Assembly (NCBI GenBank): GCA_001179505.1
Contig: CDMY01000496.1
Coordinates: forward strand, 1,179-65,178
From: Vitrella brassicaformis CCMP3155
Taxonomy: Eukaryota > Protista > Chromerida
Direction of reading: 5' to 3'
DNA length: 64,000 bases
Part shown: positions 12,808 through 64,000 of the stretch, piece by piece
How positions within the stretch are numbered: the stretch's first letter is position 1
Layout of the letters: every line of letters begins with the position of its first letter
The notes under the pieces: model-generated
The model's database searches: none
What the model was told of the DNA's origin: nothing
The model's input: only the letters and a program-made list of their open reading frames with translations
Made by a program: the position numbers and the translations under genes

Positions 12808-12841
<34 letters not shown>

Positions 12842-19600: not shown

Positions 19601-20108
19601 ACGCTCATGTGATGGACAGGCACTTGTGGCTTACGGAGCTGTGTGTTGTGCCATGCAGTAAGGCGTCATCAGCTTCTCCATTACACGCTGCCAGCAACCT
19701 GCATACGGGACAACACACACACACACACACACACACACGATGAAGACATACAAATCGGTATCGCAGGGACACACTGCCGTTGACAGACGGTGCTTCTGCC
19801 TCACGTGTCGATGTGTGGTAGTGTTGTGTGATGAAGTTATCCTCCGCCCTCCCATGTGTGCCGCACACACGACACAGTGTGTGCCTCTCGCCACTGCAGA
19901 CACACACATAACACAGTAACGTGGACCATCTATGACAGAAATTAGAGATCTCTGCCGACCCGTTGTCGAAACGGAACCTCCGGTCACCGACAAACAGACT
20001 GCCCGGCTCTGTCACCACCTCCTCGGTCACGTCGGTGTGCGGAAAGGCCCAGACGGCCTCGAACACAGCATCGACCACCATCCTCCGTCTCGCCCGCCAG
20101 ATCTGCAA
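16682..20108 (-). CDS. Lineage-specific hypothetical protein (multi-exon; LRR-like beta/alpha repeats in the C-terminal half)
   Basis: Long coding blocks at 16682-17455, 17470-17710, 17830-18040, 18090-18500 and 18800-19080. The N-terminal exon encodes VDAVFEAVWAFPHTDVTEEVVTEPGSLFVGDRR, which is shared with the gene at 47268. Several internal junctions were not resolved. Confidence 0.55.
19930..20075 (-). repeat. 146-nt coding module, inverted copy of 47713-47858
   Basis: Codon-by-codon comparison by eye gives about 17 mismatches and no indels. Confidence 0.9.
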
Positions 20109-31028: not shown

Positions 31029-31063
<35 letters not shown>

Positions 31064-32210: not shown

Positions 32211-32472
32211 CTATTCTATCGTCACTGATCAATCCTCCGTCACTCACACGATGAATGAGTCTCAACAACACTGTGATGTCAGGGTAGCCTGCTGCGGATT
32301 CGCGCGATTCGGCTCCTGCTTTTTTCTGTTCCCCTCATGCGAGCTGAAGCTCGCAGAGGAGCAGGGGAAAATCGCAAAAAAAGCCTCAGATGTGTGGACC
32401 GTCATGAGCAGCAGCATCCGCATGACAAGATCACCAAAGATCTGTGCTGATACCGTGATGCATCTGACGAAA

Positions 32473-34500: not shown

Positions 34501-36105
34501 ATGATGGATGCGGACGTAGATGCAGCGGCCGATGCTGGTCCAGCTGGAGTTGCGGCCGATGGCATGGCTGGCGACGTCGGCTTTGATGACGTCTTTGATG
34601 AACCGCAGGATGGACAGCAGCAGCAGCAGGAACAGGGACAGGGCCAGCAGCAGCAGCAGAGGCAGCGACGCAGCACCAATGCATCCAATGTCAGTGCCGC
34701 GGCTGCAGCTGGTGGTGCTGGTGCCGGCCGCGGCAGAGGCAGACGGCGTAGCTCAGGTGAGCAACATGGATGGATGGATGGAAATTCAAAGTGGGACCCA
34801 TCTATGCGCCTGTCGCCGTATCTCTGTGTGTCTGTGGCTATGGCTCAGTTGGTGGCCTTTCGGCGTTCGAGCAGGCGCGGCTACAGGGGGTATTACACAA
34901 TCACACAGACGACAACAACAGGGGGTATCTGTCCCTCAGTGCTGTCTGTCTGTCTGTGTGTATCGATGGATGAAATGGATGGATGCAGACACAGCTGCGT
35001 CAGACGGGCACGCAAGGCCGTGGGGTTGGTGGTGGGGGTGGGGGCGGCTCGCCCGATGGCGGGGGAGGGGGAGGGGGAGATGGTGGGGACGATGACATGG
35101 ACATGGACATGGGCGACGAGAATGACCCTAACGTCTACAACAAAGGTACGCATCGGTGGATGGGCGGGAGAGAGCTGCTGATGGTGTGGGTGTGGGTTGA
35201 TGTGGTCAGGTGGTCCGATGCGCGTCCATGTGGTGCGGCGGTTTGAGGACTTCTGGAACACATACGGCGAGGGCAACGCCGACGACGATGTCCAGATGGT
35301 ACTCACACACGTGCACACATGCGTTGTAGGGAGTGCGTGTGTGGATGTTCGGTGCTCTTTGTTTGTGTGTTGTGTAGGTCGATGGGGCCGAGGGTGACGT
35401 AGAGGTGTCGTACTACGAGAGGAAGCTGCGGGAGCACCTCATCACGACACCCGGCAAATCGGGGTGCGTCGGGCGGCTGGGGGCATGGGGGCTATGTCCA
35501 TGTGTGTGTTTGTGCAGGTTTGGCGTAGATCTGTCGCACATCGAGGGCACAGACATGACCCTCTACAAGTAAGTCTTACCCCTGACATGAGCTCTGTCAA
35601 CCCAGGATGCACAGACTGATACCCTCTTTCTTTCTCCTTTGTGTGCAGGTGGTTTGAGCATTTCCCGCGTGCCGTCATCCCAGAGATCGACGCCGTCCTG
35701 GACCAGGAAAGAAAAATCAGAAAGCACCAACAGATCCATCCATCCATCCATCCATACACACGTGTGTGATTGTTGTGTGTGTGTGCAGAAGGTGAGGGCG
35801 GCGTGTGACGACCTGGCCATGGAGGAGGAGCCCGCACCCAGAATCGTAAGACGCACACACGCATCCACACACACATGCATGGCCACCACACGCGTGTGTT
35901 GGATCAGCTGCACCCGTTCAACTTGTCGGTCAAGTCGCACATCCGCAGCCTCGACCCCTCGCACATCGACTCACTCGTCGCACTCAAAGGTGCAACATGC
36001 GCACTGACGGCCACACACACACAGAGAGTGCGAGTATGGGCGTCTTTTGGCTGTAGGGATTGTGATTCGCACTTCTGAGCTGATCCCAGAGATGACCTGC
36101 GTACA

Positions 36106-36142
<37 letters not shown>

Positions 36143-38306
36143 GCCATCTGTGCGCGTGTGTACTTGCGCGTGTGTGTGTGTGTGTTATATCAACTCAGGC
36201 GGTGTTCCGTTGCCAGGCCAAGGTCGGCACCGGTCCGCTGAACAGCCAGAGGGTGTGCATGTACAAGGAAAATGTACCCGTAGAGGAAGGTAATCTACAC
36301 ACACACAGACAGGATAGATGCAATCAATGCCTACATGTGGTGGGGTGGGGTGGATTTGTGTGTGCAGGTGGGAAGGTGGTCGAGCCCGAGAGCTGTCCCG
36401 CCTGCAAGAAGACCAAATCCATGACACTCGTCAGCTGACCTCCACCACACACACTCTCTGTCTGTCTGTGTGCAAATGACATGTCCCTCTGTGTTTGTGT
36501 GGATGGATGGATGGATGTGTGGATGTGTGGATGCAGTCTCACGGCGAGTGCATCTTCAGCGACAAGCAGCTCATCAAACTCCAGGTGCCCACGCGCGGAG
36601 CTGCGTACAACACAACACACACACACACACACGTACTCATGCAATGCAGGAGTCGCCCGAGGACATGCCGGCCGGCGAGACGCCTCAGACCAGTGCCTAT
36701 ACCCACCCCTACCACACACCCATGCGCGAGTGTGTGTGAATGTGTCGTTTTTTTTTCATCAGTTCAAGTGTTTGCCTACAGCGACCTGGTGGACTTCGCC
36801 CTTCCCGGAGACAGAGTCGAGGTCACAGGTACGTCACGCGACCGCCTTGCCCACACAACCACAACCACACCCACACACCCATTCATCCACACACAGGTGT
36901 GTATCGGTGCAAGCCACTGCGCGTGACGAGGCGCGTCCGGACGCTCAAATCCGTCTTCAAAACGTACGGAATATACATCGAGACCCCCCCCCCCCCNNNN
37001 NNNNNNNNNNNNNNNNNNNNNNNNNNNNNNNNNNNNNNNNNNNNNNNNNNNNNNNNNNNNNNNNNNNNNNNNNNNNNNNNNNNNNNNNNNNNNNNNNNNN
37101 NNNNNNNNNNNNNNNNNNNNNNNNNNNNNNNNNNNNNNNNNNNNNNNNNNNNNNNNNNNNNNNNNNNNNNNNNNNNNNNNNNNNNNNNNNNNNNNNNNNN
37201 NNNNNNNNNNNNNNNNNNNNNNNNNNNNNNNNNNNNNNNNNNNNNNNNNNNNNNNNNNNNNNNNNNNNNNNNNNNNNNNNNNNNNNNNNNNNNNNNCCCC
37301 CCCCCCCCACACAGAGAGAGAGGGGGGCAGAGAGAGGGCGAGGCGCCAATGTGAGTGTGCGTGTTCCAATGGCTGACAGGTTTGTTGACGCGTACAACAT
37401 CCAGAAGACGGCGAGCGAGCGGATGCGCATCGCAGAGAACGACGACCAGGCCCAGCCAGGGGGCGATGAGGTCGACCTGGGCTTCACTCAGCAGGAGATC
37501 GACAAATTCAAAGAGATAGCCGACATGGGGGAGGTACGCGAGCCATCAACACACAACACACATGACCTCGATGGATGGATGGATGGCTGGATGGATGGCA
37601 TCCATAACAGGGTGTGTACAAGGTGCTGGTCAAGAGCTTCGCCCCGAGCATCTGGGAGAATGACGACGTCAAAAAGGGTACGTGTGTGTGTGTGTGTGTG
37701 TGAGAACAAAAGAGCACTTGCCGGATGCACGCATTTCTCTGTGTGTGTTGGGGTAGGTTTGCTGTGTCAGCTGTTCGGGGGCAATGCGTGCTACAAGACG
37801 CGCAACAAAGACGGCAAAGTCACCTGGAGAGTCAGGTCAGTCTGAGTACATGTGCTGTGTGCTGTGTGTGAATGTGCTCCGACGCCGTGCCGTGTGTGTA
37901 GGGGTGAGATGAACATTTTGTTGTGCGGCGACCCCTCGACGGCCAAGTCGCAGCTGCTGGGATACTCACACAAGATTGCACACAGGTAGTTAAATACCTG
38001 TGAGACCACACGAGAGAGCGAAAGCATACCACGTCTCAAACACATGGATGGACAGGGCCACGCAGGCGACCGGCAGAGGCACGTCGGCCACCGGCCTGAC
38101 AGCCTACATACTCAAGGCAATCTCACAATCACACAATAAGACCAACACGGAAACACACACATGGATGGCTGGCTATGTCTCTGCGTGTGTGTGTTGATAG
38201 GATCCCGAGACCAAGGAGGTGATTTTGGAGAGCGGCGCACTCGTACTCGGAGACAGAGGTAACCCTCCCCAACCCAATTTCCCATATTCATCTCTTTGCG
38301 TTTCTT

Positions 38307-38342
<36 letters not shown>

Positions 38343-40292
38343 TGTGTGTCACCAGGTTTGTGTTGCATCGACGAGTTTGACAAGATGGACGACAGCGCAC
38401 GGTAGAAACCAGCAGCTCACCGTGCACACGCACATGCATTCACCTGAGAGTTGGGCTATGTGTGTGTGTGTGAAGTGCGATATTGCACGAGGCGATGGAG
38501 CAGCAGACGGTGTCCATCGCCAAGGCCGGCATGGTCTGCTCACTCAACGCCAGAACCGGTGGGTGCCTGGTGGGGAGTCTGTGCATCCCGAATGGGTGGA
38601 TGGATTTTCTCTCTTTCTCTCTCTCCTGCGTGTGTGCACATTCAGCTGTGCTCGCGTGTGCGAATCCCGTGCTGTCGCGATACGACCCCACCAAAGTACA
38701 CACAGAGACACAGACACACACAGGTGGATGGGATGCCCCTTTGTCCTGTGTGTGATGTGTGTGCAGTCGATAGTGGCCAACATCAACCTGCCGCCCACGC
38801 TGATGTCGCGATTCGACCTCATCTACCTCATGCTGGACAAGGCAAACAACCAACCACACACCCACTAGCCTCCACACACACACACACACACACAGGGGGG
38901 GAGACAGACACGGACACACACCACTCTCTGTCTCTCTGTGTGTGTTGGGTGTGGTGTGTGTGTTCAGTCCAACGCAACGACCGACGAGAAGTTGGCCCGG
39001 CACATCGCCCTCCTCTACTGCGGCGATGCGGCATACAACATGGGGGATGGCGAGGGAGGGGAGGGGGAGGGGGAGGGGGAGGTGGAGTTGCTCGACCGCA
39101 AGCTGCTCGCAAACTACATCAGCTATGCTCGCACGTACGCACACACAAAGGGACCAATGGGTGGGTCAACACACGTCGTGGGTGTTGTCTTGTGGGTGGG
39201 GTGTTGTTGTGCAGTCACGTGAAGCCCCGGCTCACGAATGACGCCGCCGAAGCACTGCAGGACGTATGTATGCCCGTTGATGCCCACCAGCACTCACTCG
39301 CCCATAACTCTCTCCCTTTCTCTCTGTCTGTCTGTCTGCCTGCCTGTCTGTCTGTGGGTATGCTTGTCTACAGTCCTATGTTGCGATCCGCCAGGAGGGA
39401 GGGAGCTCGCGAAGGCAACCATACACACATCCACTCACCCACCAGTCTATCTTCGGGTGTGTGTATTGGCTGCACGCAGGAATATCACGGCAACCCCCCG
39501 TCAGCTCGAGAGTTTGATCCGCATCAGCGAGGCCCTCGCGCGTATGCAGCTCAAGGAGATGGTGGAGCCAGCACACGTGCGGGAGGCCGTCAGGTAACCA
39601 CACACACACAGACAAGACACACACACACGTGTTTGTATCTCTCTCTGTGCGTGCAGGTTGATGAGGGCCGCCACGTTCAAAGCCGCCGTCGACCCACACA
39701 CAGGCACCTATACACATACACACACACACACACACACGCGGAGAGAGACGGAGAGAGAGAGAGAGAGAGAGAGACGCGGATGGATGGATGGATGGGTGCA
39801 TCTGTCTGTTTGTGTGCAGGTCGCATAGACATGGACGCGTTGTTCACGGGCACGAGCAACCTCGCGAGAGAACGGACCAACAAGATCGAAGAGGCCACCG
39901 TAGAGGCCCTGGTCCGTCTGCCACCGAGCCACATACATTCAAAAACACATATATCCATGTGTGTGTCAGAGGAATGCCCCCAATGGGATGAAGGCCGAGG
40001 ACCTGCTGCGCGAAGTCAACCAGACCCTGGTACGTACGCATTATTGATTGACGCGTCCGTGGACGAGAGCAAAGCTCCGATCTGTGTGTGGCGTGGTGTG
40101 TATTTAGACGGCTGAGGAGCTCGAGACCCTCGACCAGATCGAATTTGACTCGCACCTGGCGGGACTCGTCCGCAACAGTACGCACAGACAGAGAGAGAGA
40201 GAGAGAGCGACCCATCCATCCATGTGTGTGTGATTGCAGGTGTTATTCGTGAGACAGCACACAAGGTGTACCTCCTGGTGGTCACGGAGTGA
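34501..40292 (+). CDS. MCM4: DNA replication licensing factor MCM4
   Basis: [39 protein letters not shown], Walker A GDPSTAKSQ (37927-37950), IDEFDKM, HEAMEQQTVSIAKAG, arginine finger MSRFDLIYL, ITATPRQLESLIR and DPHTGRIDM. More than 20 short introns. Confidence 0.93.
36997..37296. other. Assembly gap (300 N) inside an MCM4 intron
   Basis: Flanked by poly-C on both sides. The exons on either side join in frame (KT|FVDAYNIQK), so no coding sequence is missing. Confidence 0.8.
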
Positions 40293-47267: not shown

Positions 47268-49296
47268 ATGGACAAGTGACTCACGCAATCAGTCACTGCT
47301 GCAGACACACAGACACAACACATGCATCTATCGATTTCAACGTGCACATCTTCCAGGCATACCTTTTGGACTCGTTCGGCCCCCTCCGCTCCCTCTGAAA
47401 TCTCCCTCCCATCTGCGAGCTAAGCTTGCAAACCTGCCGTGCGCGTGAAGGGTGGTTACGACGGCGGAGGAACCAAACAGGAGGAAGAAGCGACGTGTCG
47501 ATGGTGCTGATGGAGATCTCCCCGACAACGATGGAGATCTGCACAAGACCGCCACCTCGCCCCCTCCCGCCCTCCCCCTGCACATCGGCGACGCTGCATC
47601 CCCGAGTGCCCATCTCTACGGCAGCCCTGAGGCGAATGCGCCATCGTACCAGTCGACCAAGCGGCCTCTCACGCCGCCCCTCACCCAATGCTCTGACAGT
47701 GAGTGCCTGCTCGTGGATGTCGTCTTTGAGGCCGTCTGGGCCTTTCCGCACACCGACGTCGTCGAGGAGGTGGTGAGAGAGCCGGGCAGTCTGTTTGTCG
47801 GTGACCGGAGATGCCATCTCGACAACAGGTGGGCAGAGATCTCTCATTTCTGTCACAGGTTGGGCCACGTGTCTGTGTTGTGTGTTGTGTTTGTTCATTC
47901 ATCTTTGTGAGCATCGCTGAAGGGCACTCACTCTTTCTTGATGTGTTTGTTGTGTGCGTCAGGCATGTCGGCTCATCAAGCAGTGGTGCCGCTGACCAGC
48001 AGCCAGCCACACCAGACACCATCCAATACCAGTAGCCCACCCACACCCACCCCTTCACACACACAACCCTACACACAGCGCGTGGCATACTCGTGTGTAT
48101 GTGTGTGCGTCAGAGAGGGAATCGTTGAAGCTCGGCGGTGAGGGACGCAAGGCTCTGATCAAGAGGCTCAGAGAGTTCCACGAAGGCAGCAAGGACCTCG
48201 TGGTGACCTCACCAACCACACTCAGACGAGGCACTGCTGGCCGGTGTGTGAACTGCCCTCTTGTCTCTCCGGTGGCTTGGTTTGCTGGTTGGGTGCAGGA
48301 GGAGACGCTGCTCGATCAAGGTCTCAAATACGGCGAAATCCGCAACGCCACTCTGCCACAGGTAGACAGACACAGACACAAACACACACATGAGCATCTG
48401 TGTGTGTGTCTGTCTGTCTGTCTGTCTGTCTGTGTGTCTGTCAGCTGCTCAAGATGGCTTACGTGTGTGGTCTGTGGGAGGAGGCCGTGCAGCTGCACCG
48501 CGACCGCATGAAGCGATGCACACCCAGACCACTGACCCTCCCACCGCCCCCAGGCTGCGGCCTCACCGCACACCAGCGGCCCCCGCCATTCCCCTCCGGC
48601 CCCCGCCATTCCCCTCACCCCCACTAGTAAGCCCCAGGAACCATGGCCACATCCACTGGTCGCCCGGAACCATCTGAGCGTGCGGGCGCAGTGTGCCTGC
48701 AAGCCAACAGGGGATGTCCCCTCACCACAGGTGCCGCAATCGTCGCACTTGAAGGAGGATCACCCCGGCAGCCGCCTGGCGCACGAGGGCGTCGGGGCAC
48801 GCCGCGCCTGGTGTTCTCCGAGAACGTCAAGGACTTCTTCAACAAACACTACCAGATGACGGAGCCGCCCTCCGAGTCGGTGTTGCTGGGCGGTAGCCTG
48901 GAGGAGCTGACCAGACCAACCACGAAAACCGTCAAGCGGAAACATGTAGGCGCTGAACAAGGGGGGAGAGAGGGCTGCGGGGTCGGACCACTGTTGTCTG
49001 TGTGGGTGGCGGCCATCGTGTATCGCATCTCTGGAGCAGTCGGCCATTCGTGCGAACCACAGCACTCCCTCGGCTCGGCGGCAGTCGCGTACCAGGAACA
49101 GGACGAGGAGCAGGCTGACGTGCAGTCCATCTTAGCGCCCAAGGCCAAGCAGAAGAAAACGGCCAAGAAGAAGCCAAAGGCGGCAGCACCGAGGGGCTGG
49201 GCGAGGGCGAAGGCCAGAAGCCGAGGCAGGGGAGGAGGGGGAGGAATTGTTGGCGGCATCGACAGCGGCAGCACAGCCGGCGGCGTATTATGGTGA
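47268..49296 (+). CDS. Lineage-specific hypothetical protein with NLS-like basic stretches, 3' end 49296 or 49348
   Basis: MDK|VVTTAEEPNRRKKRRVDG..., shared module VDVVFEAVWAFPHTDVVEEVVREPGSLFVGDRR, helical exons (ESLKLGGEGRKALIKRLREFHEG; LLKMAYVCGLWEEAVQLHRDR), and a Lys-rich tail. Confidence 0.55.
47713..47858 (+). repeat. 146-nt coding module, copy of 19930-20075
   Basis: gtggatgtcgtctttgaggccgtctgggcctttccgcacaccgac...gcagagatctctcatttctgtcacag, ending at a splice donor. Confidence 0.9.
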
Positions 49297-49821
49297 CGAC
49301 GATGAGGACATGAGGATGGCAAGCGATCACGACAAGGCGGATGAGTGAGAGGAGGCGGGTGGTGTAGATAGTCGTGGCTGACTTCTTGATGCATGGACAC
49401 GTGCGTGACTGACCGCATTCATGGGTTGCGTGAATGCGTTCATTCGCAGAGCACAAAAGTCCGCTTCCAAGCGGCGGGCTGCATGCAGGCCGCCTAGGGT
49501 ATTCCATGAAACCGCTGGGAAGGGTGCCGTCTCTCTGAACGTACTGAAGGGCACGTCCACAGACAACCTGCCGGCGATGCAGCGCGCCGGCCTCTACTCA
49601 TAGCCTCTGCTGCTTGCCAGGTACGATACGCATCAACAAATACTGCGTGCATGCCTGCTCCCTAGTACAGATCAGATCCCGCCATGTTCCATTACCTTCG
49701 TCCCCTCCTCAGGCTGATTAACTGTATTGTGGCCATGCCCAGGGAGATCCCCTCCCGGGACGACCCATCCCAGATCATCGTGGTTGATTGACTTATCTCT
49801 CTTCCCTTCTTGTGTTTGGCC

Positions 49822-52190
49822 ATGCCGAACACTCAGAGCTCATCGTGGAGCAGCTGGGAGGTGCCCGCCAGGCCAGTGCCTGAGGACCTCAAGCACCTGC
49901 ACCAGCTTTATGGCGACTCGGCCTTCGGCAAGACGCTCGCCAAGTGGGCCCAGGAGATACCTGACGCGGCTGCCATCACGTGGCTCAACGGTGATGGGGA
50001 GCCGGCCGAGGTGTTCACATACAGCGAGCTCTTCAGCAAGGTGCAGCGGCTCGGCGCCTATCTCACCGAGGATCTGGGATTGGAGATGGGTGACCGGGTG
50101 ATCCTGTGCTATCCGCCCGGCGCGGACTTCATCCTCGCCTTCCTCGCATGCCTTTACACGGGCATCGTTGCGGTGCCTGTGTATCCCCCCGCCCCCAACA
50201 CCACCAACATCGATGTGCCGCGCTTCTGCGACATCGCCGAGAACGCTGGGGTGCGCTATTCGCTCACCAACACCGCCTACCAGAAGATAGCCCTGGTCGT
50301 GGGCACGCTCAGCAAGGACAGCAGGTGGAGATCTATCGAGTGGATACTCACCAGCGACGCATTCAAGAGGACGGGTGCCGACAAGGGTGGTGACGAGCAC
50401 GAGACCGTCTACACCCCCCCGTGCATCGGCCTGAGCGACATCGCGTTGCTGCAGTTCACGTCGGGGTCCACATCGACGCCCAAGGGCGTGATGGTGACGC
50501 ACGGCTCGCTGCTGCACAACGTCCACTGCTGCATCACGGCCTACGGCTGGGACAGCAAGATCGACGACCCCACCATCCCCAACATCACAGCGACGGGGCA
50601 GCCCTACAGTAGGATGCGCGAGATAATGATGCAGCGTCACGAGATCAGCAACCGGGTGCGGGGTCACCGCATGCGGTGCTTCTCGTGGCTTCCCGTCTAC
50701 CACGACATGGGGCTCATCGGATTCCTCTGCACGCCCCTCTTCTTTGGATTTGAAGCTGTCCAGATGTCGCCGCTCGACTTCGTCATGAAGCCGCACCTGT
50801 GGCTACAAGGTGCCTGCACAAATCCCGAGCCGACCACCGAGTGATGCTCATGTGGTGTTTGTGTGTGGTTTTATTCTCATGGAATAGGCATGAGCCGATA
50901 CAAGGCTGGCGCGTGCGCGGTCCCAAATTTTGCCTTCGAGTTGGTGACGCGCAAGATGCCCGACAGCGTGTTTGAGGAGCTGGACCTCAGTCACGTGTCC
51001 GGCTTCCTGTGCGGGGCAGAGCCAATCAGAGGGGCCATTGTAGATAAATTCGTCAAGGTGCGTGTGTGCGCGTGAGTGGGTGCAGGCGGCCAATGATGAA
51101 TGAAAGAGAACACGATGGCTGTCTGTTTGTGTCTGTGTTGTTGTCCATTCAGAAATTCGCGAGGAAGGGTGTGACTCGCAGCAAGGTTCTGCCAGCGTAT
51201 GGGTTGGCCGAGAACACCCTGTGCGTGTCGGCCCGCAAAGACATTGACAGCGAGCCGTTCATCATCAGTGTCAACGCCGAGAAATTGAGAAACCAAGTAC
51301 AAGAACAAACACATAGCAGACATCCGTTGCACACATCTGCGTGCGTGTGGCCAGGGTGTGGTTGAGTTGGTGGATGAAGCTGACATGGATGGCAGTCATG
51401 AGGGCGAGTACCAGCGGCTCGTCGGATGTGGCGTACCCCTCTCTGGAATAGACGGTACACACACCACTGACCGACGATATCGATCACGAGATAGGCATAG
51501 TTGTACCGCCTGCTTCGTTCAGTTCGCATTGTTGACTCCGAAGCGATGAAGGAGCTGCCGGAGGGCCAATGTGGTGAGGTGTGGGTCATGTCTGGCAGCA
51601 CGGCCCGCGGCTATTTCAACCAGCCCGACGAGGCGCAGGAGTCGTTCCACGGGCAGTGCATCTACCTGACAGGCGACAAGTCGGAGCCCTTGTACCTGCG
51701 GACAGGTGACATGGGCTTTTTCTACAAGGGAGAGCTCTTCATCGCCGGGCGCATCGAGGACATGATCATCGTCAATGGTCGCAACTTCTTCCCGCAGGTC
51801 ATCGAGGAGGCCGCAGAGAGCTGCGAGTCGGTCCGCAAGGGGTGCGTGGCGGCCTTCTCGCTGGAGGTGGATGATCAGGAGCGGCTGGGGCTGGCGGTCG
51901 AAATCAAGATGGAGGAGGGGAGCGGCTTTTCGATGATCTGGGGACGGCTGTCGCAGCTGCGGCAGGCGTTCACCAGCACGGAGTACAAGGCGATTAGTCG
52001 CGAGATATGCAAGGTCGTCTCGGTCAAGATCGGACTTCCCGTCTTCCACATATGGCTGCTCAGACCAAGAACCATTCCAAAGACGACAGCAGGTACATGT
52101 ATGTGACATACACACATGCCGACGGAGAATGTCACATTCATCTATTGTTGTCCATCTTTCTTCCCTGTCAGGCAAGGTTCGGCGCTCCAA
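49822..52190 (+). other. PKS loading fatty acyl-AMP ligase (FAAL) domain
   Basis: LLQFTSGSTSTPKGVMVTH, WLPVYHDMGLIG, PNFAFEL, CGAEPI, AYGLAENT, FAAL-type insertion ISVNAEKLRNQGVVELV, LRTGDMGF and IPKTTAGK. Confidence 0.9.
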
Positions 52191-55100
52191 GACGCGTGAG
52201 GTTCTCCTTGACAACAAGGACCTGGCAGGTCTCATCTGGGATGAGGTCGTGGGGGAACCCGATGCGGACAAGAAGGAGGTGTCCGCAGCTGCTCGAGAGA
52301 GGCCGCCCGTCGCTCCCTTTGCGACACGAAAGGCAGCACGGCACGGCGACGGGAAGGACAAGGGCCTTTCAGTCGCACAGAGGAGGGTCCAGTCTGCAGT
52401 GATGGCGTCGGCGGGCAAGATCTTGGACACCGACGTATGCGACTTCGACACGCCCCTGCACAAGCTGGGTGTCGACTCCATCAGGGCGCTGGAGTTCGCC
52501 GAGGACGTGTCGAGGGAGCTGTCAATGACTCTCGAGCCGGCGTTCGTCTTCAACCAGCCAACTATGAATGACATCATCGACTTCCTTGTCGGGGAGCTCG
52601 AGGGCCGGGCCGCCGAGGAGCCCGCCAAGGAAGCCACACTCGCGAGCGGCATCCGGGCAGACGAGCCGATCGCCATCGCTGGGGCGGCGTGTCGGCTGCC
52701 CGGCGGAGTGACAACCCTTGCATCCTTCTGGGAGCTGCTTAGCACCCGCCGTGATGCGATAGTGGAGGTGCCGCTGACCCGCTGGAACATCGACGAGGTC
52801 TATGACGCCGACCGTGACATGGATGGCAAGATGTACATCAGAGAGGGAGGCTTCATCGACGACGCAGAGATGTTCGACAACGCCTTCTTCAACATCGGCC
52901 CCGCTGAGGTCAGCTGCATGGACCCCCAGCAGCGGCTGATGCTTGAAGTGGGCTACGAGGCCTTCCACAGCGCGGGCCTCAGCCGCGAGAAGCTCATTGG
53001 TCAGGACATGGCCGTGCTCATCGGGTGCTGCTCCTTTGACTGGTACGACGTATACAACCAGACTGGCCTCAGCGTGAGCAGCTACAGCGCGACCGGAGTC
53101 GCCGCATCAATCCTCTCCAACCGCATCTCCTACATCCTCGGTCTCAAGGGCCCCTCCATGACCATCGACACGGCATGCTCATCTTCATTGGTGGCCATGG
53201 ACGTGGCGGTCAAGGACATGCGCATGGGGGTGTGCCGCGGTGCCCTGGTGGGAGGCGTCAACATGATGCTCAATTCACAAGTCACGGTGGCGTTGTGCAA
53301 GGCACGCATGATGGCGCCAGACGCCAGATGCAAGACGTTTGACGCCAAGGCCAACGGCTACGTGAGGGGCGAGGGTGGGGTTGCTATCATCCTCAAACAA
53401 CTCTCAGACGCATCACCCGACCTGGTCGGCGTGTTGGCCTGTCTGAGAGGCACAGCTGTCAACCACGGAGGGAAGACAGCCAGCCTGACAGCGCCAAGCG
53501 GTCCAGCCCAGCAGCAGGTCATCAGGTCGGCGCTGCACCAGGCCGGCCTCCAGCCATCATCAATCGACTTCGTGGAGTCGCACGGCTCGGGCACGTCACT
53601 TGGCGATCCAATCGAGGTGAATGCGATCAAGGCCGTGTTCGCCGGCGGGCGAGACTCGAAACTCCCTCTCCTGCTGGGCGCCCTCAAGACCAACATCGGG
53701 CATCTGGAGGGAGCCGCGGGTATTGCGGGGGTCCTAAAGGCCGTACTCGTGCTGCAGATGAAGCAGGCGCCCCCCAATCTCCACTTCAACTCACTCAACC
53801 TGTACATCGACACCGAGGGCTTCCCGGTGGTCTTCCCCACCGAGCCCGTGCCGCTCGTCTCTGGCCTGCCCGCCAAGGACCGCATGGTCGGCGGCGTCAG
53901 CTCCTTCGGCTTCGGGGGCACGAGTGCACATGTCATCCTCGAGGAGGTGCCACTAGGTCTGACTCGCCAGTCCGAGGCTATCATGGAGCTGACCAAGTCA
54001 GGTGTCAGCCTCACGATCGAGACGTGCCTCGCCAAGCTCAAGGGCACTCACCAGTGGAACCACCGGAGCTTTCCGTGGGTCGAGGCGGCCCATCCTGCGC
54101 TCGGTCGCCGGCACACGACCCCGACCGGCCTGACCTTCGAAGCCACCCTGCGACAAGACCTCAAGGCGCTCATCCAGGACCACGTCGTCCTCGGTCAGAC
54201 ACACACACCTCCTTGCTGCTTGAAAAACACATCATGTGGCTGGCTGTGTTTCTATGTCTTGATTTGTACACAGGCGTGCCTCTGATGCCCGGCGCAGGGT
54301 TCATTGACATTATGGCCGGTGCAGGCCTGGCGGCTGCGCAGGCGGAGAGGGGCGCCAAGACGTCATCGGCGGAGGAGCTGGTACATCTGGAGGAGGTGTC
54401 GTTCGAGCGGCCGCTCATGCTGGCCAAAGCTGACGACAAACAGCCTGAGCTGGCGAAGATGCCCACCCTCCGTGTCACCGTCGAGAAGCAGGCGACCACC
54501 GATACCGACGCTGCCATGCCCCCCATGGCCGTCGAGATCTCCACACGGGCGCCAGGCGAGGAGGACTTCGTGCCGCATGCCACCGCCCGTTTGGTGAAGG
54601 TCGCGGGTGCGGGGGACGGCGAGAGAGACCTGGTGGAGGATCTCACGGCCCTCAAACACCGGTGCAACAAGGTCGCCCCAGTTACAGACTTCTACACGCA
54701 GCTCAAGGAGATCGGTGTGGCGTACGGTCCGAGGTTCCAGACGGTGAGGGAGCTGTTGGTGTCGGACGACCAGGCTCTGGCCCTGCTCAAGCTCGACCCG
54801 CCCATCAAGCCATTCGAGGGAGGCTTCCGGCTGCATCCCGCCATCCTAGACGGTGCGCTGCAGTCAGCCGCTGCGGTACTCGCGGCCGATCAGTCCGGCA
54901 AGGGGAATACCAAGGCACTTCTGGTGCCNNNNNNNNNNNNNNNNNNNNNNNNNNNNNNNNNNNNNNNNNNNNNNNNNNNNNNNNNNNNNNNNNNNNNNNN
55001 NNNNNNNNNNNNNNNNNNNNNNNNNNNNNNNNNNNNNNNNNNNNNNNNNNNNNNNNNNNNNNNNNNNNNNNNNNNNNNNNNNNNNNNNNNNNNNNNNNNN

Positions 55101-58100
55101 NNNNNNNNNNNNNNNNNNNNNNNNNNNNNNNNNNNNNNNNNNNNNNNNNNNNNNNNNNNNNNNNNNNNNNNNNNNNNNNNNNNNNNNNNNNNNNNNNNNN
55201 NNNNNNNNNNNNNNNNNNNNNNNNNNNNCGCGCCTAGTGTCAAGGAAGATATCGACACGTTGCTCGCGGAGGGACGAGGGGAGACGGTCATGTGTCTGCT
55301 TGGACTGAGCTCGGACGTTGATGCGCAGCACGTTCTCCTCGGGGCCATGCAAGTGGCAGCAGCCCTCATTGGCGGCGACTCGGGCTCGCAACACAACAGC
55401 GGTGCCCTCTTCTTCACGTCCAGCATCCACAGGATGCACGCCCGTGATCCCGTCGAGGGGCGACCGGTCCATGCGGGCATCTGGGGCATGCTGCGAACCG
55501 CGAGGCTCGAGCTCACAAATCAGAGGCTCGAGCGGCAGGATGCAGCTCGCCTCGTGACTGTGGATTTGGACGGACCAAGCTCGGCAAGATGGGAGGACCA
55601 GCTGCTCGGCGTCGCGGCCAACTCATCACGGCTCAGAACTGAGGAAGAGACGGAAATTGCCGTGCGCGCCGACGTTATCTACGCGCATCGACTGATTAAG
55701 AGCTCCCTTGTGGCGCGAGGGCCCGTTGAGCTGGAGCTGTCCGGGAGAGGATCGCTGAAGAGCATGATGAAGTTGCGCGCTCAAGAGCCTGAGGATCGGA
55801 GAGAGCTCGCGCCTGGAGAGATGGAGATCCGCGTGAGGGCTGCGGGACTCAACTTCCGGGACCTTCTTCTGGTGCTAGGCGCTTGTGCAGCTGCTGAAAG
55901 AGTGTGGGTCGATGCCGGAGGGGAGTGCAGTGGGACCGTCACGCGTGTGAACGGCGATCCATCTGATGCCGTGTTCAAAGTGGGGGATGAGGTGTATGGC
56001 GTAGTCAGTGGGTGCCTCAAGACCTACGTCACGACCAGAGCCGCTGGGCCAGTGGTCCTGAAGCCGCCCAACATATCCTTCGGTGCAGCTGCTGGGCTGC
56101 CGCTTATCGTCGGCACGGTGGAGGTCTGCCTTCGAGACATCGCACACGTGAAAGCTGGCGACCGTGTGCTGATCCACGCTGCGACAGGTGGAGTTGGATT
56201 GACCGCCGTGCAGCACTGCATCAGGGCAGGAGCCATCGTCTACGCGACGGCCGGCAGCGACCGCAAGAGGACTCTCCTGCGACATCTAGGCGTCCAGTAC
56301 ACCACAAGCTCAAGAGACCCGCATCGCTTCCAGTCGCACATGCAATCGTTCCTGGGAAACGAAGATCGGCTGGATGTCGTCTTGAACTGCCTCAGCGGTC
56401 ACTTCATCGGCTTCTCTTTGGCGCTACTGCGTCCCGGTGGATGGTTCGTCGAGATCGGCAGGCGAGGCATCTGGAGCCGGGAGAAGATGGCTGAAGAGCG
56501 CGCCGACGTCAACTACGAAGCTATTGCTCTCGACGTCATGATCCGTGACGACCCTGTGTGGTTCCGCGGCATGCTGACCCGCATCAACTGCATGGTCGCG
56601 ACGGACCAGCTCACCCCTCCTCCCCTTCACGCCTTCGATCTCAGCGACGAGCACGAAGGGGGCTCAGCAGCGTTCACCTTCATGCGGCGAGCGCTCCACA
56701 TCGGCAAGATTGTCCTCACCGTGCCCTCTGCTCCGGGGCTCGAGGTGATCGCGGCACGAACGACGGAGAAGCGTTCACGGAGCTGCCCTTATGCGTACGT
56801 GATCACTGGCGGTCTTGGCGGCCTTGGTCTCGTGGTGGCTGCATGGCTGATCGAGCATGGGGCCAGGAGCATCATCCTTGCATCGCGACGAGGCCAACCT
56901 ACTCAGGAGATGCAGGAGAGCAAAGAATGGCAGCGGCTCACGACCGTCATGCGGAGGGCCGAAGCGACGGAGGGGTCGTCCATCACTCTGCGCGCAGCCA
57001 AGTGTGACGTGAGCTCCATCGAGGACTGCCGCGCCCTGATCACGCAAGTCCAAGAGGAGGGACTGGTGCCCAAGGCGATCCTGCATGCTGCTGGCACATT
57101 GAGTGACGCAGGCATCGGCAATCAGACGCTCGAGACCATAGCGGATGTCTACGGCCCCAAAGTCCAGGGCGCCTGGGCCTTCCACGACCTACTCATTGAG
57201 AGCGGCGTGCAGGCCGACACCTTCCTGGTCTTCTCGTCCATTGCTGGNNNNNNNNNNNNNNNNNNNNNNNNNNNNNNNNNNNNNNNNNNNNNNNNNNNNN
57301 NNNNNNNNNNNNNNNNNNNNNNNNNNNNNNNNNNNNNNNNNNNNNNNNNNNNNNNNNNNNNNNNNNNNNNNNNNNNNNNNNNNNNNNNNNNNNNNNNNNN
57401 NNNNNNNNNNNNNNNNNNNNNNNNNNNNNNNNNNNNNNNNNNNNNNNNNNNNNNNNNNNNNNNNNNNNNNNNNNNNNNNNNNNNNNNNNNNNNNNNNNNN
57501 NNNNNNNNNNNNNNNNNNNNNNNNNNNNNNNNNNNNNNNNNNNNNNNGCTGGTCTGCTGGGCAACTTCGGCCAATCGAACCATGCAGCAGCAAACGCATG
57601 CCTCGACGCTCTGGTGACATACCGACGATCCCAGGGCCTCGCGGGCTCCAGCATCCAGTGGGGCGCCTGGACAGAGCAAGGCAAGGCGGCACAGCTCGTC
57701 ACTCAACGACAGCTCGAGAAGATGGGCTTCGCTGCCGTCACCAATGACATCGGCCTTCGGAGCCTCTGGGCCGTCCAGGCTCACATCGCAACCATCGACG
57801 TCATCGGCTGCCAGCCCATTCGTTTCGAGACCTACTTCCGTGTCATCCCCCGCACGCCCTTCTTCTCCCGTTTGGAGGTCAAGGAAGCCAGGTCTAAGGC
57901 TGGCGGACCTTTCTTGGCTCGCACAGCTCTTTGTGAAGAGGGCTGGGCCCCGTTGGAGGATCCCGTCAGCCGCGAGGCAATGAGAACGGCTCTGGACAGT
58001 GTGGGGGTCCTGCTCACTCACGGGGCCGCGGAGCTGTATGATGCTCTTCGGCAAGAGGAAGGCCTCAAGCATGTGGAAGTGTGTTCGAGCGTGGAGGCAC

Positions 58101-61100
58101 TGGCAAATGCAGCGAGGCGTCTCCGTGACACACCAGGAGGGGTCGTTCTAGTGCATCGATGTCGTGATCATGCGGAGGATGCAGCGCATCAGAGGGAGCA
58201 GCTTTGCGCTTCTATGAAGGCGCTGAGGTCTTCGGGTCCTGATATGCCTGTGGGGGTTCTCGTGTTGGTCGATAAGCCTGATGGTGATGAGCCCTCTTAC
58301 GACAGCTTCCTCTCATTCAAGAGTCTCGAGGGCGGTGATGATGCCGCAAAGTGCACCATCCGGTCGCTGGATTTCATCGGGACGCCTCCATCCCTCGCAG
58401 CGACTGCCTCAGTGACGTGCACGGTCATCAGCATGATGGTCTCGAAGACGCAAGACGGACCCGCTGGGTCCGAAGTGCCATGGGCCTATCGGGACGGCAT
58501 GCTGTTGGCACCACGTGAGTATCGGACATTGAGGGACATCCCTCTGTCCATCGACCTGTTCCCAGCTGCCCTCCTGTCGGACACAAGGACATCCTCAGGC
58601 ACGGGAGTGCACGTCAAGTGGGCAAACGATTGGCAGGTGGCACACAGCAGCACACCAGCTTCCTCACCATCCGCGCACCAAGTGGTGATGTGCATCCATG
58701 CACTGGCCCTTCCGCCCTCGGCACAAGACGCCGATGATCGCCTGGCTGGTCCCTTGGCATGCGGCGGCATTGTTGCGGAGGTCGGAGATGCCGTTTCACA
58801 GCTGAAAGTGGGCGACACGGCGGCTGGCTGGCTTGAGGATGCTGCACAACAGGTCAGAGCGGACAGGGCCGTCACGGATGCACGCCTTCTGAAGCGCATC
58901 GATACCACTGAGACGCCGCCAGAGGGCAGCTGGACACTCGTCGGGCATCTCGAAGCATCAAGGCGGAATCTCGGGGCCCAGGCGGCTGTAGGCGAGAATG
59001 GGCTTCGCATGCTGCTTGACAGTGTCACCGCAGATGGTCGGGTGACGGTTTGTGAAGAGGACGTGGAAGACACTTTCCGCCTGTCAGATTCCCTGGGGAA
59101 GCAGCGAGCGGACAGTGACGAGATTCTTGTCCTTCGAATCGGTCGAGGTGCTCCCGCTGGTGCTGTGGACGGCTCATCACCTCCACTGTCCCTGAGTGAG
59201 CACCTGTCCGCCTCTATTCAGCGTGCGATGGAGTCGGATGAAGCACGGCAGTGGGCTGATGGAATTGTGCAAGTTGAGGAGGCCTGTCGTGCATACTGTG
59301 AGTCGGCCATCAAGGCTGTCCGAGAAGCTGATGTGGTCCATCCACATCACCGCAAGGCGTATCGAAGCCTCGTCGACGCTCTGCGGGGCTCAGATCGGNN
59401 NNNNNNNNNNNNNNNNNNNNNNNNNNNNNNNNNNNNNNNNNNNNNNNNNNNNNNNNNNNNNNNNNNNNNNNNNNNNNNNNNNNNNNNNNNNNNNNNNNNN
59501 NNNNNNNNNNNNNNNNNNNNNNNNNNNNNNNNNNNNNNNNNNNNNNNNNNNNNNNNNNNNNNNNNNNNNNNNNNNNNNNNNNNNNNNNNNNNNNNNNNNN
59601 NNNNNNNNNNNNNNNNNNNNNNNNNNNNNNNNNNNNNNNNNNNNNNNNNNNNNNNNNNNNNNNNNNNNNNNNNNNNNNNNNNNNNNNNNNNNNNNNNNGG
59701 CATGGGCCTATCGGGACGGCATGCTGTTGGCACCACGTGAGTGTCGGACATTGAGGGACATCCCTCTGTCCATCGACCTGTTCCCAGCTGCCCTCCTGTC
59801 GGACACAAGGACATCCTCAGGCAAGGGAGTGCACGTCAAGTGGGCAAACGATTGGCAGGTGGCACACAGCAGCACACCAGCTTCCTCACCATCAGCGCAC
59901 CAAGTGGTGATGTGCATCCATGCACTGGCCCTTCCGCCCTCGGCACAAGACGCCGATGATCGCCTGGCTGGTCCCTTGGCATGCGGCGGCATTGTTGCGG
60001 AGGTCGGAGATGCCGTTTCACACCTGAAAGTGGGCGACACGGCGGCTGGCTGGCTTGAGGATGCTGCACAACAGGTCAGAGCGGACAGGGCCGTCACGGA
60101 TGCACGCCTTCTGAAGCGCATCGATACCACTGAGACGCCGCCAGAGGGCAGCTGGACACTCGTCGGCCATCTCGAAGCATCAAGGCGGAATCTCGCGGAC
60201 CAGGCGGCTGCAGGCGAGAATGGGCTTCGCATGCTGCTTGACAGTGTCACCGCAAATGGTCGGGTGACAGTTTGTGAAGAGGACGTGGAAGACACTTTCC
60301 GCCTGTCAGATTCCCTGGGGAAGCAGCGAGCGGACAGTGACGAGATTCTTGTCCTTCGAATCGGTCGAGGTGCTCCCGCTGGTGCTGTGGACGGCTCATC
60401 ACCTGCACTGTCCCTGAGTGAGCACCTGTCCGCCTCTATTCAGCGTGCGATGGAGTCGGATGAAGCACGGCAGTGGGCTGATGGAATTGTGCAAGTTGAG
60501 GAGGCCTGTCGTGCATACTGTGAGTCGGCCATCAAGGCTGTCCGAGAAACTGATGTGGTCCATCCGCATCACCGCAAGGCGTATCGAAGCCTCGTCGACA
60601 CTCTGCGGGGCTCAGATCGGGACGCTTCCACACGGAGTCCGAAGTTCTCTCTCGAGAGCGCTCCGCAGCAAGTGTCTCACGAGGCCAGCCTCGCGCAAGC
60701 TTGCAGCTCTCACCTGATCGACGTCCTGAAGGGTGCCGTCGATCCACTGGAGCTCATCTTCCCTGAAGGATCCATGGACTTCGCGACCGCCATGTACCAA
60801 GACACCATCCCATCACAGTTCAGCAACGGTGTGGTCATGGAGGTCGTCGACGCAATATGCAGACATCGGCTGTCAAGTGCCACCGCACAGCGAGTGCACA
60901 TCTGCGAGGTGGGCGCTGGCACTGGTGGCACGACCTCTTGCGTCCTGCCCAAGCTCGATGCCAGCCGGACGACCTACTTCTTCACTGATATAAGCGAGTA
61001 CTTCCTGCGCAACGCTGCCAAGCGGTTCGTCGACTACCCCAACGTTGACTACTGCCTGTTCGACGTCGAGAGGGATCCCCGTCACAGCGGCCTTGCGACA

Positions 61101-64000
61101 GGCATCTTCGACCTGGCGATTGCCGTCAACGTGCTGCATGCCACGCAAGATCTCCGTGCGACGCTTCGCAACGTGAAGGCGTCTCTGAAGCCTGACGGCC
61201 TTCTCATCATATCGGAGCTGACGCGGCACAGCTTCATGCTGCAGACAACATTCGGGCTGGTCGAGGGCTGGTGGCGCTTCATTGACTCGGACCTGCGGCG
61301 TGACGGTCCTCTTCTGCCCCAGTCCGGCTGGCAAAGGGCCTTCCACGACACGGGATTCGTCTTGGAGTACGCAACGCCCAGCGAGGGCATCTTCGGACAT
61401 CAGAGTGTCATGGTCGTGCGCAACGCAGCGGACAGCGGCGTTGCTGTGCCGAGACCCCTGCCGTCCAGCCCTGTCGTGACCTCAAGGAATCAATGCGTCC
61501 TGGTGTGCGGCGATATTGATGCTATTGCCTTGGCAGCAGCTCGAGCCCTCATTCAGCAGGGATGCAAGACCCTCGTCGTTGCCTCATGGGGACCGCCTCC
61601 TGCCAATCTGGCCGCGTGGGTGACTCACGTGTCTGACGGCATCCGCGTGACGGCCATGAGACTGCGATACGATGCACGAGATCGCGGCATCCGGTGCGGG
61701 GGTATGTCGTGGTGTGAAGCCTTGGCCAAGAGGGAGGGGCCACCCATCACGCGGTGTCTCTGCGTTGTGAATGGACAGTCAGCAGAGGACGACGACCAGC
61801 AGCTGATCCGGGCTCGATCATTGGTTGAGACCGTGCAGGCCCAAGCTCCTGAATCGACCGTCGTCACCCTCGAGGCATTGGGCAAGTTTACCGCAGAATC
61901 CCACACTCTCCCTTCTTCGCCTCTGGTTGAGGCTCTCAGCCGCACTCTGAAGGCCAAGCCCTCTCATCGATCGGCTCTCGTTCGATGGGATGCCTCGCTG
62001 CTTCAACTGGATGCCTGCTTCCTCACTGAAGCGCTGCAAGTGTCCCTGAGCTCGTCGCCCTCGCCAGGCGCCCGACACGTCTTGAGAGTGCAGCGAACCA
62101 GTCAGACGGAAAGGACGCCGCCTGCAGGAGAAGAGACAGGACGAACTCCAACGGCGGGAGTCATTGGCCTGAGTTCGTCACAGCTGCGATCTTACATCCA
62201 GTCGGTGGTAGTTGAGTCGGCGGCTGGTGTGTTAGGACAGGAAGTGGTCGACGTCACTGCGCCGCCTCTGGATTCCCCTCTGCAGGAGCTGGGCATCGAC
62301 TCACTCGGCGCCGTCNNNNNNNNNNNNNNNNNNNNNNNNNNNNNNNNNNNNNNNNNNNNNNNNNNNNNNNNNNNNNNNNNNNNNNNNNNNNNNNNNNNNN
62401 NNNNNNNNNNNNNNNNNNNNNNNNNNNNNNNNNNNNNNNNNNNNNNNNNNNNNNNNNNNNNNNNNNNNNNNNNNNNNNNNNNNNNNNNNNNNNNNNNNNN
62501 NNNNNNNNNNNNNNNNNNNNNNNNNNNNNNNNNNNNNNNNNNNNNNNNNNNNNNNNNNNNNNNNNNNNNNNNNNNNNNNNNNNNNNNNNNNNNNNNNNNN
62601 NNNNNNNNNNNNNNNGATCGCCTGGCTGGTCCGTTGGCAAGTGGCGGCATTGTTGCGGAGGTCGGAGATGCCGTTTCACACCTGAAAGTGGGCGACACGG
62701 CGGCTGGCTGGCTTGAGGATGCTGCACAACAGGTCAGAGCGGACAGGGCCGTCACGGATGCACGCCTTCTGAAGCACGTCGATACCACTGCGACGCCGTC
62801 AGAGAGCAGCTGGACACTCGTCGGCCATCTTGAAGCATCAAGGCGGAATCTCGGGGGCCAGGCGGCTGTAGGCGAGAATGGGCTTCGCATGCTGCTTGAC
62901 AGTGTCACCGCAGATGGTCGGGTGACGGTTTGTGAAGAGGATGTGGAAGACCCTTTCCGCCTGTCAGATTCCCTGGAGAAGAGGCGAGCGGACAGTGATG
63001 AGATTGTTGTCCTTCGAATCGGTCGAGGTGCTCCCGCTGGTGCTGTGGATGGCTCATCACCTGCACTGTCCCTGAGTGAGCACCTGTCCGCCTCTATTCA
63101 GCATGCGATGGAGTCGGATGAAGCACGGCAGTGGGCTGATGGAATTGTGCACGTCGAGGAGGCCTGTCGTGCATACTGTGAGTCGGCCATCAAGGCTGTC
63201 CGAGAAACTGATGTGGTCCATCCACATCACCGCAAGGCGTATCGAAGCCTCGTCGACGCTCTGCGGGGCTCAGATCGGGACGCTTCCGCGCGGAGTCCGA
63301 AGTTCTCTCTCGAGAGCGCTCGGCAGCAAGTGTCTCACGAGGCCAGCCTCGCGCAAGCTTGCGGCCCTCACCTGATGGAAGTCCTGAAGGGTGCCGTCGA
63401 TCCACTGGAGCTCATCTTCCCTGAAGGGTCCATGGACTTGGCGACCGCCATGTACCAGGACACCATCCCATCACAGTTCAGCAACGGTGTGGTCATGGAG
63501 GTCGTCGACGCAATATGCAGACATCGGCTGTCAAGTGCCACCGCACAGCGAATGCACATCTGCGAGGTGGGCGCTGGCACTGGTGGCACGACCTCTTGCG
63601 TCCTGCCCAAGCTCGATGCCAGCCGGACGACCTACTTCTTCACTGATATAAGCGAGTACTTCCTGCGCAACGCTGCCAAGCGATTCGTCGACTACTCCAA
63701 CGTTGACTACTGCCTGTTCGACGTCGAAAGGGATCCCCATCACAGCGGCCTTGCGACAGGCATCTTCGACCTGGCGATTGCCGTCAACGTGCTGCATGCC
63801 ACGCAAGATCTCCGTGCGACGCTTCGCAACGTGAAGGCGTCTCTGAAGCCTGACGGCCTTCTCATCATATCGGAGCTGACGCGGCACAGCTTCATGCTGC
63901 AGACAACATTCGGCCTGCTCGAGGGCTGGTGGCGCTTCATTGACTCGGACCTGCGGCGTGACGGTCCTCTTCTGCCCCAGTCCGGCTGGCAAAGGGCCTT
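49822..64000 (+). CDS. Giant modular type I polyketide synthase, FAAL-primed and AT-less, truncated by the window end
   Basis: Introns at 50810-50887, 51058-51152, 51297-51354, 51455-51522, 52093-52171 and 54194-54273 give one continuous frame. Domain motifs for FAAL, ACP, KS, DH, ER, KR, C-MT and ACP are listed separately. The frame from 59721 stays open to the window end. Confidence 0.93.
52387..52590 (+). other. PKS ACP domain 1 (loading)
   Basis: DTPLHKLGVDSIRALEF...FNQPT, with the phosphopantetheine Ser codon at 52477-52479. Confidence 0.9.
52663..53946 (+). other. PKS ketosynthase domain with intact Cys-His-His triad
   Basis: EPIAIAG, DPQQRLMLE, TIDTACSSS (Cys at 53176), ESHGSGT, NIGHLEGAAG and VSSFGFGGTSAHVILEE. 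Confidence 0.95.
54091..54928 (+). other. PKS dehydratase domain
   Basis: HPALG, DHVVLG|VPLMPG (HxxxGxxxxP split by an intron), YGPRFQTV and HPAILDGALQ. Only about 48 aa separate it from the KS. Confidence 0.9.
54929..55228. other. Assembly gap (300 N) between the DH and the KR structural subdomain
   Basis: The flanks do not overlap. The frame is preserved across the gap, possibly by chance, and the true length is unknown. Confidence 0.9.
55720..56720 (+). other. PKS enoylreductase domain
   Basis: EIRVRAAGLNFRD, GECSGTVTRV, VLIHAATGGVG, VYATAGS, FVEIGRR and HIGKIVL. Confidence 0.9.
56795..57830 (+). other. PKS ketoreductase catalytic domain with a Tyr-to-His change at the YxxxN position
   Basis: YVITGGLGGLG, ILHAAGTLSD, KVQGAW, FSSIAG / AGLLGNFGQSNHAAAN (CAT at 57581-57583) and SIQWGAW. 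Interrupted by the 300-N gap at 57248-57547. Confidence 0.88.
58479..60620 (+). repeat. Near-identical 920-bp direct repeat inside the PKS (58479-59398 and 59701-60620)
   Basis: Both copies start catgggcctatcgggacggcatg and end ggctcagatcgg. Scattered substitutions, e.g. cagctgaaag versus cacctgaaag. The copies are separated by the 300-N gap at 59399-59698. Confidence 0.92.
60480..61420 (+). other. SAM-dependent C-methyltransferase domain of the PKS (unit 2)
   Basis: DPLELIFPEG, ICEVGAGTGGTT (60906), YFFTDISEYFL, FDLAIAVNVLHAT, LKPDGLLIISE and FGLVEGWWRFIDSDLR. Confidence 0.9.
62180..62315 (+). other. PKS ACP domain 2 (truncated by gap)
   Basis: IQSVVVESAAGVLG...DSPLQELGIDSLGAV, with the Ser codon at 62301-62303. 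Confidence 0.85.
62316..62615. other. Assembly gap (300 N) within ACP2, before repeat copy 3
   Basis: The left flank ends mid-ACP and the right flank starts mid-repeat, so real sequence is missing. Confidence 0.9.
62616..64000 (+). repeat. Third copy of the PKS internal repeat (matches 59958-61342)
   Basis: Collinear from gatcgcctggctggt to caaagggcctt, with private substitutions such as gcaagtggc versus gcatgcggc. Confidence 0.92.
63140..64000 (+). other. Second complete-looking C-methyltransferase copy (unit 3), runs off the window
   Basis: Near-identical to 60480-61342 at offset 2658: EVGAGTGG (63564), VNVLHAT and FGLLEGWWRF. Confidence 0.88.

Follow-up and report, generated by a model that had tools for sequence, protein, structure and literature searches.

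A polyketide synthase (PKS) gene at the downstream end of a 64 kb scaffold stretch of the chromerid alga Vitrella brassicaformis CCMP3155 (contig CDMY01000496.1) raises the question of whether an enzyme of this type can carry several C-methyltransferase (cMT) and acyl carrier protein (ACP) units in a row that are all served by a single ketosynthase (KS). The whole stretch, which we refer to as the window, is made up of seven contigs separated by six runs of N. A first-pass annotation of the letters had described three collinear copies of a cassette, labelled 'ER0'-cMT-'KR0'-ACP, with no KS visible between them, and had considered either a KS-less tandem array or a set of recently duplicated full modules that were collapsed. 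According to our analysis, the apparent array would, with a probability of about 0.75, be a near-identical repeat that the short-read draft assembly failed to resolve, most likely one of recently duplicated whole modules.

Copy 1 (58477-59398) is the last 922 bp of contig 5 (57548-59398), copy 2 (59699-62315) is the entire contig 6, and copy 3 (62616-64000) is the start of contig 7, which is cut by the end of the window; all PKS domains and copies given here lie on the forward strand. What appears as three copies is three separate contigs tiling the same PKS segment, consisting of the linker after the ketoreductase (KR), the 'ER0' region, the cMT, a KR-like stretch and the ACP. In a self-BLASTN comparison copies 1 and 2 (58479-59398 vs. 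59701-60620) share 98.48 % identity over 920 bp with 14 mismatches, copies 2 and 3 (59958-61342 vs. 62616-64000) share 96.82 % over 1385 bp with 44 mismatches, and copies 1 and 3 (58736-59398 vs. 62616-63278) share 96.23 % over 663 bp with 25 mismatches, each with 0 gaps. Contigs 5, 6, and 7 each have a single reading frame that is open from the first base to the last. The collinear copies, their private substitutions and the lack of stops and indels, as described in the first-pass annotation, are real and far beyond chance, with identities of 98.5 %, 96.8 %, and 96.2 %. However, the positions 58479, 59701, 62616, 59398, and 62315, which had been regarded as ends of repeat units, are all contig ends, since every similarity stops at the end of a contig. 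No repeat boundary was found inside any of the contigs. Copy 1 aligns through the final base of its contig, the 922-bp suffix of contig 5 dovetails with the 922-bp prefix of contig 6 at 98.4 %, and contig 7 aligns from base one, which is equivalent to 59958 and therefore 259 bp into copy 2. Both contig 6 and contig 7 begin inside the repeat unit. An ACP that is joined to the start of a next unit is present on none of the contigs, contig 6 stopping in the middle of the ACP, and the continuous sequence on which a KS-less array would have to be read is not found. It is true that no KS is visible between the copies, but this is uninformative as there is only N between them. With differences of 1.5-3.8 %, the overlaps remained unmerged, and the contigs were therefore written one after another with placeholders of 300 N. 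Both signs of assembly redundancy, dovetails that reach the contig ends and gap lengths that are placeholders, are found at this locus.

The copies nevertheless represent more than two sequences. Within the 663 bp that all copies have in common, 20 sites set copy 3 apart from the other two, 6 sites set copy 2 apart and 4 sites copy 1, the branching pattern is ((1,2),3) with copy 3 as the most diverged variant, and site 60199 has three different states (C/A/G). Sequencing error as the source of the variants was ruled out, given 14-44 substitutions without any indel and with intact frames, and a mosaic of two haplotypes was ruled out as well, since each contig would have to switch 3-8 times and two haplotypes cannot account for a site with three states. 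The ratio of nonsynonymous to synonymous substitution rates (dN/dS) between the copies is 0.6-0.9, a value that seems compatible with very young duplicates and is not indicative of sequencing error. As far as the sequence can tell, these data imply that at least three near-identical copies of the cMT segment are present in the sequenced DNA; with three distinct lineages that differ by substitutions only, and a three-state site, the genome should therefore contain at least three copies of the segment. In this respect, the earlier statement that three variants exceed what two alleles can explain is confirmed. Within 74 bp (60196-60269), site 60199 is accompanied by four of the six substitutions that only copy 2 has, and this cluster suggests a short gene-conversion tract or the contribution of a fourth variant.

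The N runs of the window (9016-9315, 36997-37296, 54929-55228, 57248-57547, 59399-59698, and 62316-62615, in the following gaps 1 to 6) are each exactly 300 long, and at four of the six (gaps 1, 2, 4, and 5) the contig ends on both sides overlap. The ends flanking gap 1 (8976-9015 and 9316-9355) overlap exactly over 40 bp, and those flanking gap 2 (36985-36996 and 37297-37308) have 12 C in common; both gaps are closable artefacts. For gap 4, a 300-N placeholder within the KR, a true size of -5 bp is proven at the level of sequence comparison: GCTGG is present on both ends, the Pfam KR profile halts at position 138 and restarts at 138 on the other side, and the gap is bridged by a second Vitrella scaffold (L003, see below), whose positions 1058-1062 serve both sides. 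Gaps 5 and 6 are 300-N placeholders as well, the former between the contigs that overlap by 922 bp and the latter followed by the contig that begins at the equivalent of 59958. Gap 3 is the only gap within the PKS for which sequence seems to be actually missing: by comparison with a related contig (L001, see below), it conceals about 0.4 kb of the dehydratase (DH), or roughly 130 aa. The 300-N runs are, judged from these ends, fixed placeholders, and their N count is uninformative on the hidden content; those next to the copies may conceal nothing or whole modules. The earlier claim that each gap has to hide more than 300 nt can thus be discarded. Where overlaps occur at gaps 1, 2, and 4 they comprise 5-40 bp and are exact; no diverged overlap exists outside the copies, and the remaining 58 kb of the window is without any comparable redundancy.

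The way in which the genome was assembled can be assumed to have favored such a structure. The Vitrella assembly was generated using velvet (k = 75), SSPACE, GapFiller, ICORN, IMAGE, and REAPR followed by a second scaffolding round, and comprises 931,689 N in 1064 scaffolds and 4177 contigs (PMC4501334). From these totals an average of 299.3 N per gap can be computed for the whole assembly. The exact runs common to the copies are 143-174 bp long and exceed the velvet k of 75, and therefore breaks of the graph are to be expected in the repeat. IMAGE uses local assembly to lengthen the ends of contigs at gaps, and two ends are joined only if both are matched by a new contig. Applied to repeat copies that differ by a few per cent, this yields ends that are lengthened until they overlap and yet stay unmerged, as observed here. 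The scaffold writer of IMAGE presumably inserts 300 N by default. The situation resembles false duplications that arise from unmerged contig ends, as the end of one contig recurs at the beginning of the following one with 96-98.5 % identity, the gaps are of fixed length, and the ends at other gaps overlap exactly. However, three variants are present here instead of two, and therefore paralogous repeat copies are a more likely source than two haplotypes.

Besides the three contigs, related sequences argue for the duplication of whole modules. The unplaced Vitrella scaffold CDMY01000127.1 (L003, 1800 bp) matches 56187-57247 with 94.3 % and 57548-58290 with 92.7 % identity, with substitutions only and without gaps, and its synonymous divergence (dS) from the ER-KR-linker region of the window, ER being the enoylreductase, is 0.12-0.14. 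L003 is counted as a second copy on the assumption that it and the window belong to one genome; were the window derived from a sister strain, L003 might be an ortholog instead of a paralog. The duplication thus extends upstream of the cMT cassette into the ER-KR-linker. On this basis, at least two distinct near-identical module copies, the hallmark of a recent duplication, seem to be present in one genome. Two contigs of other assemblies, JARPMZ010003111.1 (L001; assembly GCA_029980125.1, 6670 bp) and JAAUYM010019160.1 (L004; 6896 bp), are 98.4 % identical to each other and have the same order KR-ACP-KS-AT-DH-ER-KR, where AT is the acyltransferase. L004 was found using a 36-mer from the ACP, whereas a protein-pattern scan of metagenome contigs revealed no relative. 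It begins in one KR intron and ends in the following one, with 84 % identity between its last 70 and its first 66 bases; because its ends repeat each other inside the KR intron, L004 spans one full tandem module, of a related type, with a period of about 6.83 kb. Contig 6 of the window ends within a stretch of 57 bp that is 100 % identical to the ACP of L001 and L004, and in both of them the ACP continues straight into a KS. Contigs 3 and 6 both terminate inside sequence that is common to another module type. The second copy represented by L003, the tandem module of L004, and the identical ACP leading into a KS in L001 and L004 are the reasons why we favor duplication of whole modules. Hence the second possibility that had been raised, collapsed duplicated modules, proved to be the better reading, whereas its detail on the gap sizes was wrong.

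According to this explanation, the copies would be equivalent segments of duplicated modules with the order KS-DH-ER-KR-linker-cMT-KR-like-ACP, either of this gene or of a very close paralog, and the other parts of these modules would either have been merged by the assembly into the one set of KS-DH-ER-KR contigs or have ended up in small unplaced scaffolds. We regard it as an even bet that the copies follow one another as modules of this very gene. In each module the KS would extend the chain, with malonyl supplied by an AT acting in trans, and the cMT would methylate the α-carbon of the ACP-bound β-keto intermediate delivered by the KS of its own module, as is inferred from CurJ-type systems. 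The reductive domains would act after the cMT, and the repeated modules would lead to a multiply methyl-branched chain. Such an arrangement would have a precedent, since module duplications with 89-98 % identity as well as displacement of the AT have been documented for algal PKSs (PMC4661987). The locus shares with the algal example (Shelest et al., 2015, PMC4661987; modules 1-3 of OluPKS3, 89-98 %) the near-identical module segments, the lack of ATs and the giant protist genes. It differs in that the copies have no assigned places within the gene and three variants exist for a part of the module only. Several points weigh against this explanation. Copy number and linkage are deduced from assembled sequence. 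Only 1385 bp of contig 7 lie in the window, and the full dovetail of 2358 bp with contig 6 is an extrapolation. Gap 3 conceals its 0.4 kb, and hence not every gap is empty. A near-identical second KS was not found in the protein database, the best match having 67 %, which fits with KS copies that were collapsed but is no proof of it.

The domains inside the repeated segment were assigned to different degrees. In copy 2 the cMT core is located at 60660-61394 (Pfam Methyltransf_12, E 4e-18), and it matches the C-MT of CurJ (PDB 5THY) with E 7e-56 over the whole core, which substantiates the original cMT label; in copy 3 the core begins at 63522. The S-adenosylmethionine (SAM) binding motif EVGAGTGGTT as well as NVLHAT and ISELT each align with a counterpart in CurJ, the Glu located 26 residues after NVLHAT is kept, and these motifs are conserved in both visible cMT copies. 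Similarity, SAM motif, and the His and Glu residues make the predicted identity as a CurJ-like PKS C-methyltransferase certain. In common with CurJ, the segment has the whole core, the SAM motif E-x-G-x-G-x-G-G-T-T, the NVLHAT and the downstream Glu, but here the cMT is preceded by a KR and followed by a degenerate KR-like stretch and the ACP. This KR-like Rossmann stretch (about 61494-61664 in copy 2), previously labelled 'KR0', gives a KR match as faint as E 0.08, on which the label rests. The first half of an ACP follows at 62208-62315 and ends with GIDSLGAV; its Pfam match is weak (PP-binding positions 3-35, E 0.016), but the label is borne out by the 57 bp shared with L001, where the ACP is complete. 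In contrast, the region labelled 'ER0', which together with the cMT lid covers 59700-60659 in copy 2, has no domain match. It yielded nothing in Pfam at E ≤10 besides a chance FeoC match, no match in the PDB for that stretch, and E 5.7 in BLASTP against the ER of the gene itself, and a single-sequence AlphaFold (AF2) model reached a predicted local distance difference test (pLDDT) score of 37, which is unusable. Judged from these searches, the similarity to the medium-chain dehydrogenase/reductase (MDR) or ER fold that would identify an enoylreductase remnant is absent, and the 'ER0' label has no support. For the roughly 320 aa upstream of the cMT no relatives are detectable, and the sole match to a protein query of the linker and 'ER0' region is the Vitrella protein P0275. 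A short cMT query revealed four homologs only, all with ≤40 % identity, whereas a search among 1.84 billion representatives revealed 9816 homologs, which cover only the cMT core with ≤41 % identity. Among the proteins listed, those with multiple cMT matches are mostly 3000-8000 aa long, which is the size of ordinary multimodular PKSs; the comparison covered the cMT matches and the protein lengths. A distant cMT homolog (P0003) has the order cMT-ACP-KS.

The alternative that comes closest assumes that the contigs originate from a dispersed paralogous PKS gene and were drawn in by read-pair links induced by the repeat, so that only one cassette would be present at this place and the other copies would be located elsewhere. 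The Vitrella assembly indeed contains small unplaced PKS scaffolds of 1442 bp and 1800 bp, and two multimodular enzymes with methyltransferase (MT) domains have been reported for Vitrella (PMC7464705). On the present data such a gene is indistinguishable from successive modules of one gene, but tandem duplication of modules is the pattern in the related contig L004, so that we regard a dispersed origin as possible but rather doubtful. As it requires at least three paralogous copies too, it overlaps with the duplicated-module explanation, and its likelihood is a share of the 0.75 given above and not additional to it. Clearly less likely are allelic or strain variants (diploid, polyploid, or non-clonal) of a single cassette at a single locus, which would amount to a false haplotig duplication. 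A dovetail at 96-98.5 % is the classical signature of unmerged haplotypes, and the differences are substitutions only. However, the three lineages with their three-state site do not fit two haplotypes unless each contig is a mosaic with 3-8 switches, the other 58 kb have neither comparable redundancy nor a diverged overlap at the other gaps, and the assembly can be shown to contain paralogous PKS fragments. The KS-less array, in which one AT-less KS-DH-ER-KR is followed by three in-frame ('ER0'-cMT-'KR0'-ACP) units, is highly improbable: the contig order of the scaffold and the open frames are all that speaks for it, whereas no junction between an ACP and a following 'ER0' unit exists, the unit boundaries coincide with contig ends next to placeholder gaps, the identical ACP of the relatives leads into a KS, the upstream ER-KR-linker exists in a second copy, and the homologs cover the cMT core only, with multiple matches in proteins of ordinary multimodular size. 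If true, this would represent a novel means by which a eukaryotic PKS multiplies its C-methylation or its carrier capacity. Other synthases are known in which the ACP alone is multiplied. An ACP duplication in a Volvox PKS has also been mentioned (PMC4661987). The likeness to tandem carrier-protein arrays, as in polyunsaturated fatty acid (PUFA) synthases and β-branching modules of trans-AT systems, is superficial and consists of ACP units without an intervening KS; those arrays were read on continuous sequence and repeat the ACP alone, whereas here no junction between units is present.

Upstream of the repeat, the gene is, to judge from its predicted domains, a eukaryotic modular type I PKS that is AT-less. 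It starts with an AMP-binding (acyl ligase) loading domain (49810-50844; PF00501, E 9e-40), followed by an ACP (52402-52587; Pfam PP-binding) and a KS (52663-53787; Pfam ketoacyl-synt N and C), which belongs to the only KS-bearing module in the window and has its closest matches in V. brassicaformis CCMP3155, in GCA_029980125.1, and in Chromera. The N-terminal half of the DH (54094-54928; Pfam PS-DH) follows, at which contig 3 ends. Contig 4 (55229-57247) contains the ER (55812-56717; Pfam ADH_N and ADH_zinc_N) and the N-terminal part of the KR (56793-57245; positions 2-138 of the Pfam KR profile). The C-terminal end of the KR and a linker of about 270 aa without domains occupy 57548-58476, which is present in a single copy in the window, the continuation of the KR being 57548-57676. 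Between KS and DH, no Acyl_transf_1 match was found using Pfam, and the direct succession of KS and DH without an AT corresponds to that of AT-less (trans-AT style) modules. The KS-DH linker (53950-53991) lacks the AT-coding segment of about 1 kb that is present in L001 (2313-3322) and L004, and the flanks are 82 % and 96 % identical. It seems that one type of module has recently lost its AT through a deletion. Over its last 940 bases, contig 3 matches the DH of L001 and L004 at 96 %, and the match includes an intron. This DH intron (54194-54273) is 80 nt long with GT-AG borders and splits the active-site motif (HVVLG|VPLMP), which is restored to HVVLGVPLMP upon removal; it is also present in L001 and L004, with a 4-nt indel. 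The KR contains at 57548-57600 the sequence SSIAGLLGNFGQSNHAAAN (motif GQSNHAAAN), with a His in place of the catalytic Tyr. The His is also found in the copy of L003, whereas L001 has the Tyr; possibly the KR is inactive in modules of this type.

Some further features of the window lie outside of the PKS gene. Two inverted sequences of about 180 bp (19897-20075 and 47713-47893), separated by roughly 28 kb, are 86 % identical and possibly represent a dispersed repeat or a transposon fragment. Compound (CA)n(GA)n microsatellites occur at four sites (12806-12846, 31018-31067, 36103-36146, and 38304-38351). An open reading frame (32182-33150) about 17 kb upstream of the PKS gene contains the N-terminal region of an alpha/beta-hydrolase (Pfam Abhydrolase_6/1, E ~1e-11). 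Scans for tRNA genes and for Rfam families gave no match in the window.

Gene models and domain counts derived from this assembly will be wrong at this locus, which also concerns numbers such as that of the MT-containing enzymes. Wherever N runs of fixed length have dovetailing flanks, gaps of zero or negative size should be considered before repeats are counted. The underlying biology is most likely an ordinary recent duplication of PKS modules, and the locus adds a case of recent module duplication together with AT loss to those of the algal PKSs.

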